Origin: Octopus bimaculoides
Taxonomy: Eukaryota
Assembly: GCF_001194135.2 (NCBI RefSeq)
Contig: NC_068989.1
Coordinates: 67,471,839-67,516,999 of the forward strand
DNA: 45,161 nucleotides
Direction: 5' to 3'
Both the position numbers and the translations under genes were made by a program. Below, piece by piece: positions 5,691 to 42,148 of this stretch; the first letter of the stretch is position 1, and every line of letters begins with the position of its first letter. The notes below the pieces were generated by a model. The model saw nothing but the letters and a program-made list of their open reading frames with translations, was not told where the DNA came from and did no database searches.

Positions 5691-6499
5691 TGCATAAGTG
5701 GGCTGGCTACATCCCTGGCAGAGGCCTTGGATTTTGGTCTCATTTGGCTTGCCGGGTCTTCTCACGCACAGCATATTTCCAAAGGTCTCGGTCAGATATA
5801 TATATATANNNNNNNNNNNNNNNNNNNNNNNNNNNNNNNNNNNNNNNNNNNNNNNNNNNNNNNNNNNNNNNNNNNNNNNNNNNNNNNNNNNNNNNNNNNN
5901 NNNNNNNNNNNNNNNNNNNNNNNNNNNNNNNNNNNNNNNNNNNNNNNNNNNNNNNNNNNNNNNNNNNNNNNNNNNNNNNNNNNNNNNNNNNNNNNNNNNN
6001 NACTCCCAACCCATGCGCTCCCATCGCGACACTGATTCTGCCCAAATTTGACGTTGATGTTACTTAGTTTGGTTTGAAATAAAGAACTTGATTAGCTTAA
6101 TAATCCTAACTTAATCCCAGGCTATACTACTAGTGGAATCTATTTCAGAGGGCAGCAAGTTACAACTTAGTAATACTGAAATACTGATCATTCTTATCAA
6201 AAGCTGCTGTTATTTTATACATATGTATATATACACACACAGGCACACCCTGTGGTGTTGAGCAGGCAGAATTTGTTAGCTAGCCAAACAAAATGCTCAG
6301 CAGCAATTTTTTCTGGCTTCATGTTCTGAGTTCTCATTCCACTGAGGTCAATTTTGTTTTTCATCCTTTTTGGGGTCAATGTAATCGATTGGATCCCTCT
6401 CCACAAATTTCAGGCCTTATTACCATAATAGAATTATATATTCCCTCCTGTTCAAACATTTTGATCACTGTCATTCCAGTTGACACCATTTTTTGAACT

Positions 6500-8363: not shown

Positions 8364-8690
8364 CATCATCATCATTGTTTAACGTCCGCTTTCCATGCTA
8401 GCATGGGTTGGACGATTTGACTGAGGACTGGTGAAACCAGATGGCTACACCAGGCTCCAATCTGATTTGGCAGAGTTTCTACAGCTGGATGCCCTTCCTC
8501 ACGCCAACCACTCAGAGAGTGTAGTGGGTGCTTTTACGTGCCACCGGCACGAAGGCCAGTCAGGCGGTACTGGCAACGGCCACGCTCAAAATGGTGTATT
8601 TTATGTGCCACCCGCAACGATCTCTCTCGAAAGTCCTTACACATGCCGCGGGCACAAGTGCCAGAAAGGCGACACAGGTGCCATCACGAA
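8364..8690 (-). mobile_element. RTE-tail retroposon
   Basis: Same family; abuts a gap. Confidence 0.85.
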
Positions 8691-9426
8691 GCACAAATAC
8701 TTTACAGCTTATATGCATAGTTACAGCCAGAATGATCAATGTGCATCATGCAAACAATGCATGCACATCCCACCTAATTTAGCTACACTGCACAATACAA
8801 CACTTAAGTACCTAAAAATACCCCTACCTTTATAAAACTAAAATCCTTTATACACAATAATCAGTTGTTGGGTAAAGGAGGGAATTACTCAACACAAAAC
8901 CTTTATAAAGCTGATGAGATCAAACCACAGTAGAAGCTGCACAACATATATAAAATTATGCATTCAGTAAATCGATGTTACAAATATCAATCATTAATAG
9001 GTTATGACAATACTGGAAATGCAATCATTCAAAATAAGAGCTATCAACATGAAACACATGAGCATAAACATATCGATGCCATGTCCAACTGCATTGATCA
9101 TCCCACGAATATAACTCAGCTTTAGAAGATTAATATCATTGGGAAAAAAATAATTTTAATCTATGCACACAACACAACCTGGTGCAAAAACCAATAGCAC
9201 TTAAACTCATAACTGTTTAATATCTTAGTAAACATTGTTGGGAAGTATATCAATGTACTTAAGCTGGTACAAAAAAAAAATACAGGTAACACCTGAAATG
9301 ATGTTACCTGATCAAACATCTGATCAAACTATTTTCGCATTACTTTTTTGCTGAAAACAATTTACTGCCTGAACCACATGGCAAACAGCTTCTTCCCTCT
9401 AGTTCTTCTTTGATCATTTACACTGT

Positions 9427-26725: not shown

Positions 26726-26788
26726 CATGTATATTCTTTTTATATATATANNNNNNNNNNNNNNNNNNNNNNNNNNNNNNNNNNNNNN

Positions 26789-26970
26789 ATTTATATTCCT
26801 GCAGAACTAATGTGGGGTATAGAATATGGAATATACAATATATAATATGACATACAATATACAATATAAAATAAAATAAAATAAAAATGGATGGCACCAT
26901 ATTGTATATCATATTATATATTGTATATTCCATATTCTATACCCCACATTAGTTCTGCAGGAATATAAAT
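26789..26970. repeat. Perfect 62-bp inverted repeat with 58-nt spacer
   Basis: 26789-26850 is the exact reverse complement of 26909-26970; the left end abuts a gap. Confidence 0.9.
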
Positions 26971-27011: not shown

Positions 27012-27045
<34 letters not shown>

Positions 27046-27101
27046 CTTTCATAAGTGATCCCTGATGCTATGTTTTTTAATTTGTTTTTAAATATCATCT
27101 T

Positions 27102-27113
27102 TTTATTTTTATT
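27102..27113 (-). terminator. Tandem AATAAA polyadenylation signals of the membrane-protein gene
   Basis: tttatt at 27102-27107 and 27108-27113, about 80-90 nt after the stop codon. Confidence 0.55.
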
Positions 27114-27193
27114 TTGAGTGAAAAAATATATTCAGTATCATGCCTGAATGAATAAATATATAAATAAATAAAGGCGTCCATAATCCATTTTGT

Positions 27194-28324
27194 TCAAGAT
27201 GTTTTTGGGATACCGATTTCAGCACATTTTTGGTAAGATGGTAGTGTGTTAGGGTCATTTTCAGGGAAGAGGGTATCGTATGATGGTGGATTAGTTGAGC
27301 CAATGTACTCAATAACTGACAACGTGCTTGTATTATCTTCAATGTCTTCTAAATCTTCATCAGAATAGTTATTAAGTAACCGCTCTGTCATAGAAAAAAC
27401 CAATGACCCCAAAAAGCATGGTAGAACAAGAAAGAATATGATAAATATATAATTTCTAGTATTGTATTCTACTGTTAATGAAATAAACTCCCATTGTTTT
27501 GACAGAAATTGCAATAAAATATATTCGGATGATTGCATTTTCACTGGTATTTTAAAACAGTTGTTGTACTTTTTAATAGGAAAATTGCTTCCTTGAATTT
27601 TATACAATGTTCTTTTCAGGGAAATATCTGCCTTAATAAGTGATCCCTTTCCAATACTTCTGAAAACAATATAGTGCATATTAGCAGCTGGTTGTGACAA
27701 CTTGAATTTCATGCAAGTAGAACCGATAGTAAAACGCTGCAAACACCGACTGCATCCTTTCTCCGATTCCCATTTCTCAAAGTTTTCTTTGCTTGTAATT
27801 AAACCAATCTCTGATAGTCCTTCACTACACAATCTCATTGATAAAGAAGAATTTTGTTGTAAATTTATGGGCCATATTTTCTCATTTTCTTCCTTCAAGA
27901 TAAATCTAACTGTATAGTTGTGTTGGACTTGTGCTTTGTTAAGTTCAGGCTTCCTTGGTAAAACATAAGCTTTAATTTTGTTTCCTTTATAGCAAATTGA
28001 TAAACTGGAGCAAAAGAGAGGCAGAATTGTGTCTACAACAGAAATATCTGATGGTAAGAGAACCATAGATCTTTTCTGGAAAACATAGCATCGCAAATAA
28101 AGTCCACCAGACAGAGACAGTATAATTATCAAAATCCAAATAACATATTTTTGTGCATTTGAAGAAATTCTTTTTAGGGAAAATAGACATCTAAAAATTT
28201 TTCTGGAAAGTGTATGAAGACAGCAAGCATTCTGAAATCTGTATTCTGGATTGTCTTCCAAGGTGTTCATGCTTAAGTCTTCAGTAAAGGTTCTCTCATT
28301 GGATTGCGATTCATTCTCATTCAT
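27194..28324 (-). CDS. Two-TM membrane protein with an APD1-4-like (DUF4792/DUF4793) luminal domain, no RING, C-terminal PPSY and LPSY motifs; single coding exon, 376 aa from the ATG at 28324
   Basis: It is the only long gap-free ORF in the window (441 codons from a TTG). It has TM1 YVIWILIIILSLSGGLYL and TM2 YIFIIFFLVLPCFLGSLVFSM. Motifs YVLPRKPEL, KIWPINLQQNSSL, LITSKENFEKW, HYIVFRS, ISLKRTLY and EYNTRNYIF follow the order I recall for the plant APD1-4 middle domain. An acceptor (ttctattttaaacAG) lies 9 nt before the ATG of MNENESQ. The TGA stop is at 27194-27196. Confidence 0.8.
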   Translation of the reverse strand: MNENESQSNERTFTEDLSMNTLEDNPEYRFQNACCLHTLSRKIFRCLFSLKRISSNAQKYVIWILIIILSLSGGLYLRCYVFQKRSMVLLPSDISVVDTILPLFCSSLSICYKGNKIKAYVLPRKPELNKAQVQHNYTVRFILKEENEKIWPINLQQNSSLSMRLCSEGLSEIGLITSKENFEKWESEKGCSRCLQRFTIGSTCMKFKLSQPAANMHYIVFRSIGKGSLIKADISLKRTLYKIQGSNFPIKKYNNCFKIPVKMQSSEYILLQFLSKQWEFISLTVEYNTRNYIFIIFFLVLPCFLGSLVFSMTERLLNNYSDEDLEDIEDNTSTLSVIEYIGSTNPPSYDTLFPENDPNTLPSYQKCAEIGIPKTS

Positions 28325-28544
28325 GATGCTTTCCTGTTTAAAATAGAAATGACAAGAGGTTGTAATGTTCATAACATTAAATATTGGTTTCAAATTTTCG
28401 CACAAGACTAGCAATTTCAGAGGCGGGATTAAATTGATTATATCAACCCTGAAAGGACGAAAGGCAAAGTGAACCTTGATTGAATTAGAACTTGGAACAT
28501 AACTTACCTGCTCCTCCAAACTACGGATCTAGTGCCAAAATTTG

Positions 28545-29325
28545 AAATCAACATTTTTTTCTTTATTGCCCACAGGGGGCTAAATATAGAATGGACAAAC
28601 AAGGACAAACAAAAGGATTAAGTCGATCACATCAATCCCAGTGTGTAACTGGTACTTATTTAATCAACTCTGAAAGGATGAAAGGCAAAGTTGACCTCAG
28701 TGGATTTGAACTCAGAATGGACAAAATGCTGCCAAGCATTTTTCCTGGCATGCTAATGATTTTGCTAGCTTACCTTAATAGAAATAGTAATGTTAACATA
28801 ATGGTAGAGGGGCTCTGAAAGGGGTCTCAGGGAGTAGCGTCCCTGCCTTCCTGAGCTATTTTTCCACCACATTTCTTGAAAATCATGGTAGAGGCCTTGG
28901 TCTCAGGACCACTCATGTCTAGAAACTGAGTTTGGGGGTGAGCAAGGGCATGCTCCCCATAGAAAATCCAGCTCCAAAAAGGCTTCATGATAGCAAAGGA
29001 GAATGGGCACCAGCCAACCCAAAGGTTGGGGTGGGTTGATGTAATCAGCTTACCCACTCCTCCAAACTACTGATCTTGTGCCAAAATTTGAAATCAATAT
29101 TTATTTCTTTATTGCTTACAGGGGGCTAAACATAGAGGGGACAAACAAGGACAGACAAACGGATTAAGTCGATTATATCGACCCCAGTGCGTAACTGGTA
29201 CTTATTTAATCAACCCTGAAAAGATGAAAGGCAAAGTCAACCTTGGTGGATTTGAACTCAGAATGTAATGGCAGACAACTAAGCATTTCGCCTGGCGTGC
29301 TAATGATTCTGCCAGCTCGCCGCCC
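28545..29325 (-). mobile_element. Two tandem copies of the second SINE family just upstream of the coding exon
   Basis: About 28545-28775 and 29095-29325 align with each other and with 22415-22620. Confidence 0.75.
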
Positions 29326-29489
29326 TTTGAAATCAATATTAACATAAAAGTAATGTTTATATTATTTGCATAATGAACAAAATCTTTTTAGTGGGAGAGA
29401 GAGGGAAAGAAAGAGAGAGAGGGAAAGAAAGAGAGAGAGAGTGAAGGAATGGAGGGAAACAACCTGTAGACTCGGTCCTCCAGAGTGTT

Positions 29490-29851
29490 GTTGTTGTTGG
29501 CACTCCGTCGCTTATGACGTTGAGGGTTCCAGTTGATCCGATCAACGGAACAGCCTGCTCGTGAAATTAACATGCAAGTGGCTGAGCACTCCACAGACAC
29601 GTGTACCCTTAACGTAGTTCTTGGGGATATTCAGCGTGACACAGTGTGGCAAGGCTGACCCTTTGAATTACAGGCACAACAGAAACAGGAAGTAAGAGTG
29701 AGAGAAAGTTGTGGTGAAAGAGTACGGCAGGGTTCTCCATCATTCCCTGCCGGAGCCTCGTGTTTTCCCTCAATAAACACTCACGACGCCCGGTCTGGGA
29801 ATCGAAACCGCGAGTCTGCTGCCCTAACCACTGGGCCATTGCGCCTCCACA
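29490..29851 (-). mobile_element. tRNA(Arg)-like SINE
   Basis: Reverse complement of the same family; flanking duplication cctccagagtgtt at 29477-29489 and 29852-29864. Confidence 0.85.
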
Positions 29852-30249
29852 CCTCCAGAGTGTTACAACAGCACAAAACATAAATAAAGATAATGCCAAC
29901 CGGAGGAGCTAAAGTCAATTAAAGAAACTCTATATTCCTAACTTGCAGTCTATGGATCCCTGACAGTCTGTAAAAGTAGTGATAGAAATCCATCAGCTAA
30001 GTTGAAAATTGTGAGGGGGCCACCAGTGTCAAATGTATAATCTGTTGCTTGATTTAACACTCCCAGTTAGTGCCATGGGTGCCTTTAACAAGGTCCATTC
30101 TGATGCAAATGTTCAGGCTATGTCTCCAGTTTGAAGATACCTTCATCCCTCCCACTTTCCTACCAGTCTCAGGGTCCTGTAAAGAAGTCATAGGCACTGC
30201 ATTCCTCCTGACTGCAACAGAAAATAAAACGGTTTTTAATTTGCTGGAA

Positions 30250-30515
30250 GTGGCCTTCGTAGGATTTTCGAGCGAGATCGTTGCCAGTGCCCCTGGACTA
30301 GCTCTTGTGCGGGTGACACATAAAATACACCATTTTGAGCGTGGTCGTTGCCAGTACCGCCTGACTGGCCTTCATGCGGGTGACACATAAAAGCACCCAC
30401 TACACTCTCGGAGTGGTTGGCGTTAGGAAGGGCATCCAGCTGTAGAAACTCTGCCAAATCAGATTGAAGTCTGGTGTTGCCATCCGGTTTCACCAGTCCT
30501 CAGTCAAATCGTCCT
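30250..30515 (+). mobile_element. RTE-tail retroposon, truncated before the tail
   Basis: Same family; ends at caaatcgtcc. Confidence 0.8.
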
Positions 30516-31566
30516 TGATTGGTGCTTTATTCGGCAATTTCCGTGAAAATTTTTTTATTTCTGTCATTTTTTTCAGTTGAATTGTTTATGTATATGTATT
30601 TTTTTTGTGTCTGTATGTAGGTGTTTATGTGTGTATATGTATATGTATACACATACACAAAAACTACATACAAACATAAGCGATTCAACTGAAAAGAATT
30701 AAAGAAATAAAAAATATTTTATGGATTGCCCTTTATTTTATTGACCCAGTAAAAACAAAAGACAAAGTTGACCTCTGGGTTTTAAACTGAAAATGTAAAG
30801 AGGTGAAACAAATACTGAAAAACAGTTTTTCTGACACTCCAATGATTCTGCCTGATTGGTGCCTTCATAGGCAGTAATAATATTCTTTCTATCATAGGCA
30901 CAAGTCCTGAAATTTGTCTGTGGTGGTAGTGGTGGCTAGTTGATAAAAAATTGAATCTAGTACTCAACTGGTGCATATTTTGTTGATCGCAGAAGGAGGA
31001 AATGCAAAGGCGATCTTGGGCGGAATTTGAACTCAGAATGTAAAGAGCTGGGAGAAATGCTGCTAAGCAATTTTTCCGATGTGCTAATGACTCTGCCAGC
31101 TCGTTGCCTTATAACTAGTTATAATATAGGTTTCAAATTTTGGCAAGAGACCAGCAATTTCGGGGAGGGGGTGTTTAAACTGATTACATCGACCCCAGTG
31201 CTCAACTCGTACTTATTTAGAGACCCTGAACTGATGAAAAGGTGCAAAGTTGACCTGAATGACATTTGAACTCAGAACATAAAGTAGGAAGAAATGTCAC
31301 TAAGCATTTGCCTGGCAAAATGCTTAATGGCATTTCATCTGTCTTTACGTTTTGAGTTCAAATTCCACCGAGATTGACTTTACTTTACATCTCTTTGAGG
31401 TCAATTAAATAAGAACCACATTATTTACATTTGACGGATATTTGTCCCCATCTTGTTTGTTGTTAACACATTTTGGTTGATATACCCTCCAGCCTTCATC
31501 AGGTGTCTTGGGGAAATTTCGCCTGGGTTCTCATTCCTAAGATATTTTGCAATGTTATTATTAAGT

Positions 31567-32163
31567 ATCTAGAGAGAAAAGCTGAACATTAGAAGCATCA
31601 GTTGTGGTGTGCAAGAGAGACGATTGCGCTGGTATGGACATGTGGTGAGAATGGATGAGGATAGCTGCCTGAAAAAGTGCCACACCCTAACAGCTGAGGG
31701 AACCCGTGGAAGAGGTAGGCCCAGGAAGACCTGGGCTGAGGTGGTGAGGCAAGACCTTCGTACNNNNNNNNNNNNNNNNNNNNNNNNNNNNNNNNNNNNN
31801 NNNNNNNNNNNNNNNNNNNNNNNNNNNNNNNNNNNNNNNNNNNNNNNNNNNNNNNNNNNNNNNNNNNNNNNNNNNNNNNNNNNNNNNNNNNNNNNNNNNN
31901 NNNNNNNNNNNNNNNNNNNNNNNNNNNNNNNNNNNNNNNNNNNNNNNNNNNNNNNNNNNNNNNNNNNNNNNNNNNNNNNNNNNNNNNNNNNNNNNNNNNN
32001 NNNNNNNNNNNNNNNNNCACTCTCTGAGTGGTTGGCGTTAGGAAGGGCATCCAGCTGTAGAAACTCTGCCAAATTTAGATTGGAGCCTGGTGTTGCCATC
32101 CGGTTTCACCAGTCCTCAGTCAAATCGTCCAACCCATGCTAGCATAGAAAGCGGACGTTAAAC

Positions 32164-32191
<28 letters not shown>
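31567..32191 (+). mobile_element. RTE-clade LINE 3' fragment: ORF end, gap, then (GAT)n tail
   Basis: REKLNIRSISCGVQERRLRWYGHVVRMDEDSCLKKCHTLTAEGTRGRGRPRKTWAEVVRQDLR carries the RTE C-terminal RLRW.GHV.R and RGRPR..W motifs. Confidence 0.88.
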
Positions 32192-32194
<3 letters not shown>

Positions 32195-32404
32195 ATTATT
32201 CAGGTCACTGCCTCGAATTGAACTCGGAATCTTGGGGTTAGTAGCCTGCACTATTAACCACTACACCATATGGCGTAGTGGTTAAGAGCGCAGGCTACTA
32301 ACCCCAAGATTCCGAGTTCGATTCCAGGCAGTGACCTGAATAATAATAATAATAACATCGAAAAATATCTTAGGAATGAGAACCCAGGTTCGAAATTTCC
32401 CCAA

Positions 32405-32450
32405 GACACCTGAAGAAGGCTGGTGGATATATCAGCTGAAACAGTATGTT
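32405..32450 (+). ncRNA. Degenerate minimal type I hammerhead ribozyme motif
   Basis: gacac-CTGAAGA-a-ggctg...cagct-GAAAC-agt-atgtt. Related copies at 39306-39351 (+), 31465-31508 (-) and 38244-38293 (-). Every copy carries core or stem mutations. Confidence 0.55.
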
Positions 32451-32929
32451 AACAACAAACAAGATGAGGACAAATATCCGTCAAATGTAAATATGTACAT
32501 AATTCCTCATCTCTTAAATAAAGAACTGTATTAAATAAATAGCAGTTGAATATCAAGGTCACTGGCTCGGGAACGAAATTTGCAAACCCAGGCCTCAAAT
32601 TTTTTACAAATAAGGTCATGTTTTATTTATTCATTTATTTATGTTCTTTGAGAAGAAACCTAATTCAAGGTACTTTTTACAGATCACTTTTAACTCACTG
32701 TCTTCTAAACCTGAGAAAAGTATGTAGGGGTGTAAATTTTGATTTTGCACTCCACAAAAATTTTAGGGGGTGCAAGTGCACCCCCTGTTCCCGGCCCACG
32801 ACCAGGGTCAATGTAACTGACTTAACCTCTTCCCTTGAAATTGCTGGCATCGTGCCAAAATCTGGGCTTTTCCAATGCCTTAGCCTCACCATCACTTGCG
32901 GTAATGCTGCAAGCGTGCTGATCGGCTTC

Positions 32930-33378
32930 GGCAGGTTATGAGTATTTTTGCCAAATTTGTGGCGGTGTATTGAACAGATTTTCACCAAATTTGGCAAAAA
33001 TATTCATAACCCTAACCCTAACTCTAAAACCCGAACCCTAAAGCTAAAACCAGTACAAACGCACGAACGATGTCATAAATTACAGTACCACCGATAGTTG
33101 TTGTTGACAAACAACGGCACTAATTTTATTCAAGGGAAAAGATCCCATTACACCGCACAACGTTTTGTTGACAATCCATAGCAGTAACTGTTTTCACCTC
33201 AATAGACGTCAGTGATTGGTTGAAACTACCAAAATACGACAACTTTTAACATGAAATAACTTCGAATATAAAAATTTTTCTCTGTTCTATAAGACAAAAT
33301 ATACAAGTATACAAAGTTTGAAAGTGTTTTGGTAGAAAACACACTAAATAAAACATAAATAAAATATGGTGCCTGCCA
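32930..33378. mobile_element. Degenerate TAACCC-containing MITE of the same group
   Basis: Contains taaccctaaccctaactctaaaacccgaaccc and gacgtcagtgattggttgaaa, plus the reverse complement of the ttcaaacttcgtatac block. Confidence 0.65.
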
Positions 33379-34681
33379 AATCAGACAGATTCAAATGTTA
33401 TAAAACGACAATGTTCTAAAAGATGTACATTTAGATAGAAATAAAAAAAACAAAAACAATATTAAGTACAAAATTGGGGACAACTTTTACAGTAAAGTAT
33501 TCATTTAAGACTTGTTCTTGACGCAATTCATATTCTCAATTGTAACGACAATACAATACTTATAGATAAAGCATGAATAAATTAGTTTTGTCTGCTCTAT
33601 TTAAAGCTGGTGGAACTGGGCTAGTTGTAGGTGAGTGACTTTGCTATTGAAAGACTCAGTGCTGAATACAGAACGAATCGTTGCCCCTTCGGGTGTTTTT
33701 GCTGACTGGCACTATTTTGACTTAATTCAAAGCAGTAAAATTATTTCATTCAAATCTCTAACCTCCGCACGGCAGACTGTTTGGGCAGAAGTATCAAATG
33801 ATACGGATATTCATTTAAAAGAAAACAGATATTTTCAATTGAATTAAAACTACAGCAATAAAAATAAACAATTAGCAAGGTTCTACTTACTGTTATTGAT
33901 CCTCTGAGATGTTTGGTGTAATTTTTGTATAGATTGTTCTAGATGTTTATAATCAAATTATGTTTTAGTTTAAATGCAGGTTAAATTCTCGGTAAATTTT
34001 TACCAAGTTCTCTTGGTGACCTTGAGACGATGTTATAAATTTGTAATGTAGTCACACAAAAAAAAAAAAAGGCGTGTTGAAATATCTAAAATAGCTTTCA
34101 GCTGACTGTTTTATTTTCTCTCCTGGTGTTCGGTTATAAATGAAATATACTTGATCACATGAATTTGATTGGAGGAGAAAAAAAATATACAGAAGAACTT
34201 TTCATGACATTACGATTTACGCCGAAATATAATTTGTCACAATAAATCACAAGAAAATCAAATAGGAAAAAAACAAAAACTTCCCCACTAAAGCAAAAAT
34301 AACTTGCCAAACAAATAAAGTTTAACGTGGTTCAAGGGAAAGATAAATATATGTGTGNNNNNNNNNNNNNNNNNNNNNNNNNNNNNNNNNNNNNNNNNNN
34401 NNNNNNNNNNNNNNNNNNNNNNNNNNNNNNNNNNNNNNNNNNNNNNNNNNNNNNNNNNNNNNNNNNNNNNNNNNNNNNNNNNNNNNNNNNNNNNNNNNNN
34501 NNNNNNNNNNNNNNNNNNNNNNNNNNNNNNNNNNNNNNNNNNNNNNNNNNNNNAACTATAAGATTATTCATTAGATATACATTTATCTAGAATCTAATTT
34601 TATCTTTCTTTAATTAAAAAATTTTTTTTTCTGTAATTTTCCATGTTAACCTTGAACTAAAAGTGCGAAACTCTTATTCAG

Positions 34682-35040: not shown

Positions 35041-35766
35041 GGAGAATATACGAAAAAACAACAACAGACGAGGACAGGTGGTCTAAGTAACAAAAGGATG
35101 TATTAGTATGACGCTCGGGAATACAGAAAGTCTTTGACGTTTCGAGCTACGCTCTTCAATGTCTGATAGTGTGCGTGTGCGTGTGTCTATGCTGAATTAA
35201 TAAAGTTAATTAATTCTGAGATAGTGGTTAAGTTATCACGTGATGATCTGTCTTTGCTGACCAGGTACTGAACCCAGAATAACGTCATGGAATTTACAAC
35301 CATTCTTCAGTAATCTTTATCTAAATGTCTTTGTCTAAATATCTTTGTCTTTAGGTAAAAAAAATGCTATGACTTCCCGTGCATCATCGATTGGGATAAC
35401 TATCTAAGTATAGAAAAGCTATTTCTGTAAGCATGTATGTAATTATTCAAAAGCATGGTCATAGCATGCTAGCCTTCTTTTTAGAATTGATTAACCTTTG
35501 CAAATAAGGAATGATTTGTTCATCTGCCTTCTTGTAAAAAAGCTTATCTTAAATAAGTCTAGTTACTGTAGCTGTACATAACTACCATAGTGTCATTGCC
35601 GTTGATGGCAGGAATGTTGTTTAGCTTATGATTTCATTTGTTTGCAGTGTTAAAACATTGATCCTCCATGTTACTTGGAGAAGGTATCAGCAAAACGATC
35701 CCTAAGCATATTTTCTCCTGAAATTGTTTCATGAAAATGAAGTTTTCCAAGGGATTCCAGTTATCT

Positions 35767-36228
35767 GGCACCAGTAACAGTAAATCACTAAGAGCACCGT
35801 CTGAGCGTGATTGTTGCCAGAGCACCAGCTGTCTGGCTTTCGTGCCAGTGGCACGTAAATAGCACCATTTGAGCGTGACCATTACCAACGTCGCCTTCCT
35901 GGCACTTGTGCCAGTGGCACGTGAAAAGTCATTTGAGCGAGTTCGTTGCCAGTACAGCTGGACTGGCTCCTGTGCAGGTGGCACGTAAAATACATCATTT
36001 CGAGCATGGCTGTTGCCAGTACCTCCTGACTAGCCTTTGTGCTGGTGGCACATAAAAGCACCCACTACACTCTCTGAGTGGTTGGCATTAGGAAGAGCAT
36101 CCAGCTGTAGAAACTCTGCCAAATCAGATTGGAGCCTGGTGTAGCCATCTGGTTTCACCAGTCCTCAGTCAAATCGTCCAACCCATGCTAGCATGGAAAG
36201 CGGACGTTAAACGACGATGATGATGATG
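35767..36228 (+). mobile_element. RTE-tail retroposon flanked by direct repeats of about 130 bp
   Basis: Same family; flanks 35636-35766 and 36229-36367. Confidence 0.85.
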
Positions 36229-41468: not shown

Positions 41469-41799
41469 AAGCCATCAGGTTATTAGATATTATAAATTTG
41501 GATGTAGAACACGTTCAAATTGGAGATCCATCATAAAGTTGGTAGATGTAGTTCACCAAGATATGCAACCAGTAATGGATGCAAATAAGCATTGGATAAA
41601 TCGAACCTCCACCATCAGGGTAGAAAAAAATCTTACGTTTCAGATCAAGATGCAGAGAAGTTTAAGGTTTCATGCCTTTAATGACAATATTGTTCATATT
41701 TGGTGGCGTCAACAGCAAAAAGTCGCTAGGAATAGTGAGTGAACATTGATGACAGTGACAAAAACAAATATGAATATGACACAGGTAAGAAAGCGAAAT

Positions 41800-42148
41800 C
41801 GTGATGGCACCTGTGCCCAGCGTCGCCTTCCTGGCACGTGTAAAGACATTCGAGCAAGATCGTTGCCAGTGCCGCTGGACTGGCTCCTGTGCAGGTGGCA
41901 CGTAAAATACACCATTTTGAGCATGGCTGTTGCCAGTAATGCCTGACTGGCCTTCGTGCCGGTGGCACGTAAAAGCACCCACTACACTCTCGGAGTGGTT
42001 GGCGTTAGGAAGGGCATCCAGCTGTAGAAACTCTACCAAATCAGATTGGAGCCTAGTGTAGCCAACTGGTTCACCAGTCCTCAGTCAGATCGTCCAGCCC
42101 ATGCTAGCATGGAAAGCGGACGTTAAACGATGATGATGATGATGATGA
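41800..42148 (+). mobile_element. RTE-tail retroposon
   Basis: Same family with (GAT)n tail. Confidence 0.85.

Follow-up and report, generated by a model that had tools for sequence, protein, structure and literature searches.

What could a membrane protein do that carries the luminal domain of a plant ubiquitin-ligase family and lacks the RING that defines those ligases? The question is raised by a gene of Octopus bimaculoides found in a stretch of 45,161 nucleotides (nt) of contig NC_068989.1, here called the window, in which positions 28324..27194 of the minus strand form an ATG-to-TGA frame of 376 amino acids (aa), the whole coding sequence (CDS) of the gene. In plant APD1-4 (ABERRANT POLLEN DEVELOPMENT) proteins the RING is C-terminal. 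These proteins are transmembrane (TM) RING E3 ligases linked to the endomembrane system, and they are orphan enzymes, with a clear pollen phenotype and no known substrate (PMC13210498). The octopus protein ends instead in an acidic tail with two PY motifs. The answer proposed here, to which we lend slightly more belief than doubt, is that it is a hairpin membrane protein with an APD-family luminal domain, whose tandem PY tail would recruit a Nedd4-family HECT ligase in trans.

A two-pass membrane protein without a RING

The gene is real and expressed, and its product is a two-pass membrane protein of 376 aa. The open reading frame (ORF) cannot be attributed to chance, because it is intact and colinear in Octopus sinensis (LOC115216439, 84% identity), in a third octopod (a transcript, 74%) and in Argonauta hians (51-53%). 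The sequence is present in many RNA runs of O. bimaculoides. The coding part of the locus is laid out as follows.

27194..28324, minus strand: complete CDS, 376 aa plus TGA (27194-27196), wholly in exon 2 (ORF, hydropathy); an identical protein is called on chromosome CM046609.1 (GCA_001194135.2)
28151..28324, minus strand: N-terminal segment, aa 1-58, predicted cytosolic, with a helix at aa 31-52 right before the first TM segment (hydropathy, AlphaFold2 (AF2), alignment)
28082..28150, minus strand: first TM segment (TM1), about aa 59-81 (hydropathy maximum aa 61-79; AF2 helix 55-81 with a predicted local distance difference test score (pLDDT) above 90; W63 in 91% of relatives)
27455..28081, minus strand: luminal or extracellular beta-sandwich, aa 82-290, homologous to the APD1-4_N and APD1-4_M regions of relatives (AF2, Foldseek, hhalign, BLASTP, alignment)
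27386..27454, minus strand: second TM segment (TM2), about aa 291-313 (hydropathy maximum aa 293-311; AF2 helix 291-326), with a ratio of nonsynonymous to synonymous substitution rates (dN/dS) of 0.13-0.25
27197..27385, minus strand: acidic C-terminal tail, aa 314-376, predicted cytosolic (hydropathy, composition, alignment)
27278..27289, minus strand: PY motif 1, PPSY, aa 346-349, preceded by N (sequence; PY column of the family)
27233..27244, minus strand: PY motif 2, LPSY, aa 361-364 (sequence; PY column of the family)

Every element of the architecture that a preliminary description had read from the letters (an N-terminal segment, TM1, a Cys-containing domain, TM2 and an acidic tail with NPPSY and LPSY) is thus recovered in place from the ORF and hydropathy. 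The region between the two membrane segments comprises 209 aa with seven cysteines (105, 111, 166, 191, 194, 204 and 256), and the tail of 63 residues holds about 13 D/E against 3 K/R.

The same description had the protein lacking a RING, and this stands, since the RING isoform that would overturn it was looked for and appears neither in the reads, nor in the frames of the window, nor in 51 relatives. Three raw RNA-seq runs and transcript contigs of the same species, aligned to window positions 27100-28560, give a two-exon mRNA whose read cover is unbroken over the CDS, through the stop codon and into the 3' untranslated region (UTR). These data contain no splice joint inside or leaving the CDS, and no RING-adding isoform is visible. 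A six-frame regular-expression scan of the whole 45-kb window found no open frame with a RING-type Cys/His pattern, the same kind of scan found none in the octopus protein or in 53 relatives, the 51 profile matches having none, and tblastn detected no second copy of the gene in the window. The CDS is a single exon in octopus, in Argonauta, in a chiton and at a further locus (L006). The protein belongs by homology to the APD luminal-domain family but is no APD ligase, since the search for the defining RING came back empty, and no E3 activity of its own is expected of it.

The start of the protein is fixed by the reads. In four runs they leave the genome at 28333, 9 nt 5' of the ATG, at a polypyrimidine-AG acceptor, and the sequence of their loose ends maps once in the window, at 33891-33920, beside a GTAAGT donor. 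In the spliced mRNA the reading frame meets a stop 60 nt before this ATG, and no other ATG in that frame lies further upstream. Given this splice and this stop, the ATG at 28324 is the true start. The non-coding parts of the transcription unit are the following.

28325..28333, minus strand: 5'UTR part of exon 2, with the acceptor ttttaaacag/gaaagc at 28333/28334 (loose read ends, four runs)
28334..33890, minus strand: intron 1, GT..AG, 5557 nt, with several copies of a repeat resembling a short interspersed nuclear element (SINE) (spliced reads)
33891..34090, minus strand: exon 1, non-coding 5'UTR, about 200 nt, its 5' end approximate, with thinner cover to about 34250 (read cover)
27070..27193, minus strand: 3'UTR, with AATAAA signals at about 27103-27114; cover drops at about 27055-27072, before a (TA)n repeat (reads)

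Read depth indicates that expression is low, and at this low depth the CDS gives no signal of A-to-I editing. Two longer versions of the protein were considered and discarded. A TTG-started ORF of 441 aa (27194-28519) is an artefact, because the splice seen in the reads at 28333 excludes its additional 65 codons, which are intronic SINE-like repeat. A 16-aa N-terminal extension of protein P0003 matches intron sequence and is an artefact of the same kind. Copies of the SINE-like repeat in intron 1 lie at 28380-28780, 29049-29325 and 30735-31220, just upstream of the CDS, and are the source of the spurious extension of the ORF. Short transcript contigs that match this repeat reach word depths from thousands to about 25,000, and the element is abundant in the transcriptome.

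At 27042-27152, about 109 nt of AT-rich 3'UTR are missing from reads of three runs, which have a few extra letters (CAT) at the joint, and the joint is not GT-AG. Splicing at the joints of the 3'UTR and the (TA)n repeat was rejected as an explanation, because the junctions are not GT-AG and carry inserted letters; they probably reflect indel polymorphism or noise in the mapping of low-complexity sequence. Position 34010 is T in all reads of all four runs against C in the reference, which differs here from the sequenced animals, and G>A at 27416, synonymous in Cys303, is fixed in one run.

Relatives and the APD1-4 domain

The homology argument rests on an exhaustive HMMER search of 1.84 billion representatives with a profile built from octopods only, which returned 51 proteins at E<=0.001, 14 of them at E<=1e-10. 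Word-indexed searches yielded 3-5 matches each, among them the orthologues of O. sinensis and of the third octopod; they missed known members of the alignment and were used only for Pfam and name annotations. All 51 relatives share one plan, namely an N-terminal segment, a TM segment, about 230 aa, a second TM segment and a tail. Every relative with an organism name is a mollusc (Argonauta, Haliotis, Lottia, Mya, Dreissena, Argopecten, Ylistrum and the chiton Liolophura), and the others are proteins from transcriptomes and assemblies. By these matches, the gene is the octopod orthologue in a mollusc-wide family of two-pass (hairpin) membrane proteins.

Pfam annotations were taken from the precomputed matches on record. 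The nearest non-octopod cluster (P0005/P0058), which matches the octopod-only profile at E 1.1e-23 and the octopus protein itself at 3e-28 over 358 aa (BLASTP), carries PF16041 (APD1-4_M) and a weak PF16040 (APD1-4_N). Further relatives carry PF16041 (P0035, P0069) or PF16040 (P0079, P0080), and the UniRef name of the Dreissena and Lottia members is 'E3 ubiquitin-protein ligase APD1-4 middle domain-containing protein'. A comparison of the octopod alignment with twelve non-octopod members by hhalign gives a match of 99.8% probability (E 4.7e-29) that extends from ahead of TM1 as far as the second PY motif. The APD1-4 domain assigned in the preliminary description is therefore upheld through the relatives' PF16041 and PF16040 matches and through full-length homology. 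What did not hold is a direct assignment, as none of the proteins of O. bimaculoides, O. sinensis, the third octopod and Argonauta has a Pfam match on record, which makes the APD link transitive. On transitive homology, the call of an APD1-4-like domain is right.

No RING-bearing (plant) APD protein is found among the 51 matches of the octopod profile at E<=0.001, and the link to the plant enzymes therefore rests on the definition of the Pfam family. Plant RING proteins with DUF4792 and DUF4793 have been described (PMC8169666). A table in a paper on wheat RING ligases also enters Hs, Mm, Dm and Dr under DUF4792/DUF4793; no such vertebrate or fly protein was identified, and the table is not relied on here.

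The fold of the luminal domain was modelled with AF2. A model made with three octopod sequences (pLDDT 46) was discarded, and one made with a 54-sequence alignment was used (mean pLDDT 85, predicted template-modelling score 0.70). In this model two helices (31-52 and 55-81) precede a beta domain of 17 strands that spans 85-289, where pLDDT is mostly above 90; a long helix (291-326) comes next, and the tail is of low confidence. In the alignment, the residues of the luminal domain conserved across the family are D93, F104-C105, S159, C166, N181, W185, C191, C194, C204, R238, Y241 and C256, and the conserved cysteines of the middle domain fit an oxidising lumen. Searches with the single protein and with the 54-sequence profile found no sequence-related chain in the PDB. 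The best Foldseek matches in the PDB are the GOLD domains of TMED1, p24 beta1, gamma2 and delta1 (E 1e-4 to 1e-3, target-normalised TM-score 0.62-0.69) and, with scores of 0.6-0.69 and E of about 1e-4 for the p24/TMED and SEC14-like set together, those of SEC14-like proteins, over about 108-125 columns or roughly half of the domain, and viral jelly-rolls and Ena pilins score about as well. Part of the modelled domain thus superposes on those of the p24/TMED cargo receptors and SEC14-like proteins, with no sequence similarity to them, and the likeness to GOLD is best taken as resemblance at the level of the predicted fold only.

Tandem PY motifs and a putative ligase adaptor

If the RING is missing, the tail is the place to look for another route to ubiquitination. 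At least one tail motif of the form [LP]PxY is present in 42 of the 50 scorable relatives and at least two in 35 of the 50, and some family members have three. Composition-preserving shuffles lead one to expect 2.7 PY motifs, against 85 observed (an enrichment of about 30-fold); the motifs are 56 times as dense in the tails as elsewhere in the proteins, and neighbouring motifs are spaced 7-27 aa apart. Both octopus motifs fall in the two PY columns of the family in the 54-sequence alignment. In the first column P, P and Y occur in 74, 87 and 85% of non-octopod relatives, respectively. In the second, P362 is found in 98% and Y364 in 89% of relatives, while position 361 is P in 76% and L in octopods. 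Comparison of the octopus protein with a relative of only 23% identity shows a much diverged luminal domain and a retained block PPSY[DE][ST]LF...[LP]PSYQ, and across three octopus-like sequences both motifs and the C-terminal 30 aa are almost invariant. Lack of PY conservation in orthologues, which the preliminary description had named as a refutation, is thus contradicted by these columns and by this enrichment.

Motifs of the PPxY and LPxY types bind WW domains of Nedd4-family HECT ligases, and recruitment of such a ligase in trans appears to be the best-supported mechanism for the octopus protein. From the sequence we infer the cytosolic orientation of the tail (which follows from the inferred hairpin topology), the binding of WW domains, the identity of the ligase, the role as an adaptor and the subcellular site. 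Both ends of the protein would lie in the cytosol and the disulfide-containing beta-sandwich in the lumen or outside the cell; the PPxY motif that precedes TM1 in two distant members fits two cytosolic termini. A Nedd4-family HECT ligase would dock through its WW domains on the tandem PY motifs and so be drawn to the membrane in which the protein resides, and multivalent binding would probably also relieve the autoinhibition of the ligase. The ligase could then ubiquitinate the protein itself, partners held by its luminal or TM parts, or both, and the ubiquitinated proteins would enter the route through endosomes and multivesicular bodies to the lysosome. Membrane adaptors with several PY motifs are known to recruit and disinhibit WW-HECT ligases (PMC12720080, PMC5892558), and the octopus protein may function like Ndfip, Bsd2 or Ear1/Ssh4, with its ligase activity in trans and not in cis.

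The tails carry further signals that bear on how this evidence is read. An acidic dileucine of the ERTPLL type ([DE]xxxL[LI]) is present in the tails of 17 relatives, and at least one PY motif has the form [LP]PxYxx[LIMFV] in 31 members, including the octopus PPSYDTL of PY motif 1, which also matches YxxPhi. The dileucine and the extended PPxYxx[LIV] signals would fit endosomal/lysosomal trafficking. They would also suit a trafficked cargo, that is, a protein whose PY-recruited Nedd4-type ligase ubiquitinates only the protein itself and so sends it to multivesicular bodies, lysosomes or extracellular vesicles, with the luminal domain as payload. The enrichment of the PY motifs and their conserved columns serve this explanation as well as the adaptor, and yeast offers a precedent in Sna3, a small PY-bearing membrane protein that is sorted by direct binding of Rsp5 (PMC2171029). 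Closely spaced tandem PY motifs are, however, typical of ligase activators and adaptors (PMC12720080), and its plant homologues are ligases whose targets are presumably other proteins. Although the sequence by itself does not separate the two, we regard sorting of the protein alone as a minority possibility, if a serious one.

A second alternative is that the tyrosine motifs are mainly YxxPhi signals for clathrin adaptors, or that their partners are WW proteins outside the HECT ligases (YAP/Yorkie, Kibra, WWOX or MAGI), in which case the protein would serve as a receptor in trafficking or as a signalling scaffold, unconnected with ubiquitin ligases. The 31 members with the extended motif and the 17 tails with an acidic dileucine argue for the first half of this proposal; for the second half, such WW proteins bind the same motif, and sequence does not tell them from HECT ligases as partners. 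YxxPhi signals do not need the prolines, which are nevertheless as conserved as the tyrosine (P362 in 98%, P347 in 87%), and motif 2 of the octopus, LPSYQKC, has no hydrophobic residue at Y+3. These features speak against the first half, and we consider the proposal as a whole improbable.

The adaptor that is preferred here can be set beside several known systems. With the plant APD1-4 proteins it would share the luminal domain family, by way of the PF16041/PF16040 matches of the relatives, and a membrane-anchored arrangement in which a TM segment comes after this domain and a short effector tail then extends into the cytosol. It differs from them in that no RING is present in the octopus gene, in its isoforms or in the 51 relatives, with PY motifs in the effector tail in its place, and in that the octopus sequence has diverged too far to match the Pfam profiles directly. 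Ndfip1 and Ndfip2 of animals and Bsd2 of yeast are likewise small endomembrane proteins, in which two or three PPxY/LPxY motifs stand close together in a segment exposed to the cytosol. They differ in crossing the membrane three times, in placing their PY motifs at the N-terminus and in lacking a large luminal domain. The octopus protein crosses it twice, its PY motifs are C-terminal and its luminal beta-sandwich measures 209 aa; no sequence relationship between it and these adaptors is seen. In the yeast Rsp5 adaptors Ear1/Ssh4 and Tre1/Tre2, a folded domain for recognition is joined to a membrane anchor, and PY motifs draw in a HECT ligase; Tre1/2 parallel the PA-TM-RING ligases as the mollusc family parallels the APD RING ligases. 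The domains of these adaptors are unrelated to that of the octopus protein (SPRY and PA/transferrin-receptor-like), and they are single-pass and fungal. Ssh4 in particular has been described as a PY-bearing Rsp5 adaptor (PMC6314561).

The Pfam domain, the principle of the PY adaptor and the automatic names of a few mollusc homologues are already known. Databases list the mollusc homologues as "uncharacterized" or under names derived automatically from the Pfam domain, and the full-text literature searched contains no study of the animal proteins or of tandem PY motifs in place of a RING. A wider proposal, which is tentative and in our view rather doubtful, is that the APD luminal domain is an ancient, membrane-embedded recognition module that lineages have connected to ubiquitination by two interchangeable means: plants by a RING in cis, molluscs by tandem PY motifs that recruit a Nedd4-family HECT ligase in trans. 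In that case the mollusc family would form a class of Nedd4 adaptors so far unrecognised, with a GOLD-like sandwich to sense a ligand in the lumen or outside the cell, and the fast-evolving octopod copy might have shifted its ligand. An animal branch in which WW-binding motifs stand in for the RING would support the idea that the luminal and TM module selects the target and that the tail only supplies ligase activity. The mollusc family would thereby offer a second experimental system for finding what the APD luminal module recognises. It is also a candidate family of Nedd4-type membrane adaptors with a sizeable luminal domain, unlike the classic Ndfip adaptors.

The octopod branch and the rest of the window

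Several observations weigh against an adaptor in the octopus. Two of them belong to the homology argument above, namely the missing Pfam matches of the octopod proteins and the missing RING-bearing plant proteins among the profile matches. In the tail, 8 of the 50 scorable relatives lack a PY motif, including chiton members with a PF16041 match, the ERTPLL signal is lacking in octopods, and PPxYxxPhi also fits a tyrosine-based AP-2 sorting signal. In the luminal domain, two cysteines that are 88% and 96% conserved elsewhere (positions 250 and 287) are replaced in all four octopods, as are the conserved juxtamembrane cysteines before TM1. Finally, the dN/dS of the whole CDS between O. bimaculoides and O. 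sinensis (L003 10001-11128), calculated by the Nei-Gojobori method, is 1.04 at a dS of 0.068, and such a value of about 1.0 may mean that the function in octopus is relaxed or changed.

Position 250 (window about 27575-27577) is I, F, I and A in the four octopods, and position 287 (about 27464-27466), in the CxPR motif of the family, is Y. The joint loss of these cysteines probably removed one disulfide in octopods. Over the CDS the two Octopus species are 93% identical, against 89-92% for the flanking non-coding DNA, which is fast for a gene kept intact in octopods. Against the third octopod the dN/dS is about 0.6, and against Argonauta, where dS is saturated (about 1.25), it is about 0.26; TM2, at the 0.13-0.25 given above, is the most constrained segment. 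Judged from these comparisons, the octopod branch is derived and fast-evolving, and relaxed and positive selection would both fit its pace.

The extreme form of relaxation would be a decaying copy of the lineage, transcribed and drifting neutrally, with the motifs as relics. The near-neutral ratio and the CDS-to-flank identities to O. sinensis are what such a copy would show, and the lost cysteines, the low expression and the lack of a Pfam match agree with it. We nevertheless consider decay very improbable and set it aside, because octopods have kept the frame open, the gene is expressed as a correctly spliced transcript, and the PY block, like the C-terminal 30 aa, is nearly invariant. In four octopod species, Argonauta (dS about 1.25, saturated) among them, the ORF remains unbroken and colinear, and a frame of 376 codons in DNA of 30% GC would not survive neutral drift over that span. 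The deeper comparisons, with dN/dS of 0.25-0.6 and the low values in TM2, also speak against it.

Outside the gene, scans for tRNAs and Rfam families found no match in the window. Three open frames of 131-140 codons, at 8425-8832 (plus strand), 35637-36029 (minus) and 41665-42084 (minus), encode a near-identical peptide (…GYTRLQSDLxEFLQLDALPxANHSESVVGAFTCHRHEGQSG…HAQNGVFY) and look like another interspersed repeat with a coding remnant. The assembly contains nine runs of N (38-782 nt), at 5809, 7582, 11539, 16976, 21543, 25753, 26751, 31764 and 34358. The last of these lies about 270 nt upstream of the main read cover of exon 1, so that the promoter region is incompletely assembled. An inverted repeat of 72 nt with 99% complementarity at 26789-26970 starts right after the N gap at 26751-26788 and may be an assembly artefact. 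A palindrome at 32186-32353 has arms of 84 nt that are 92% complementary, with no spacer between them.

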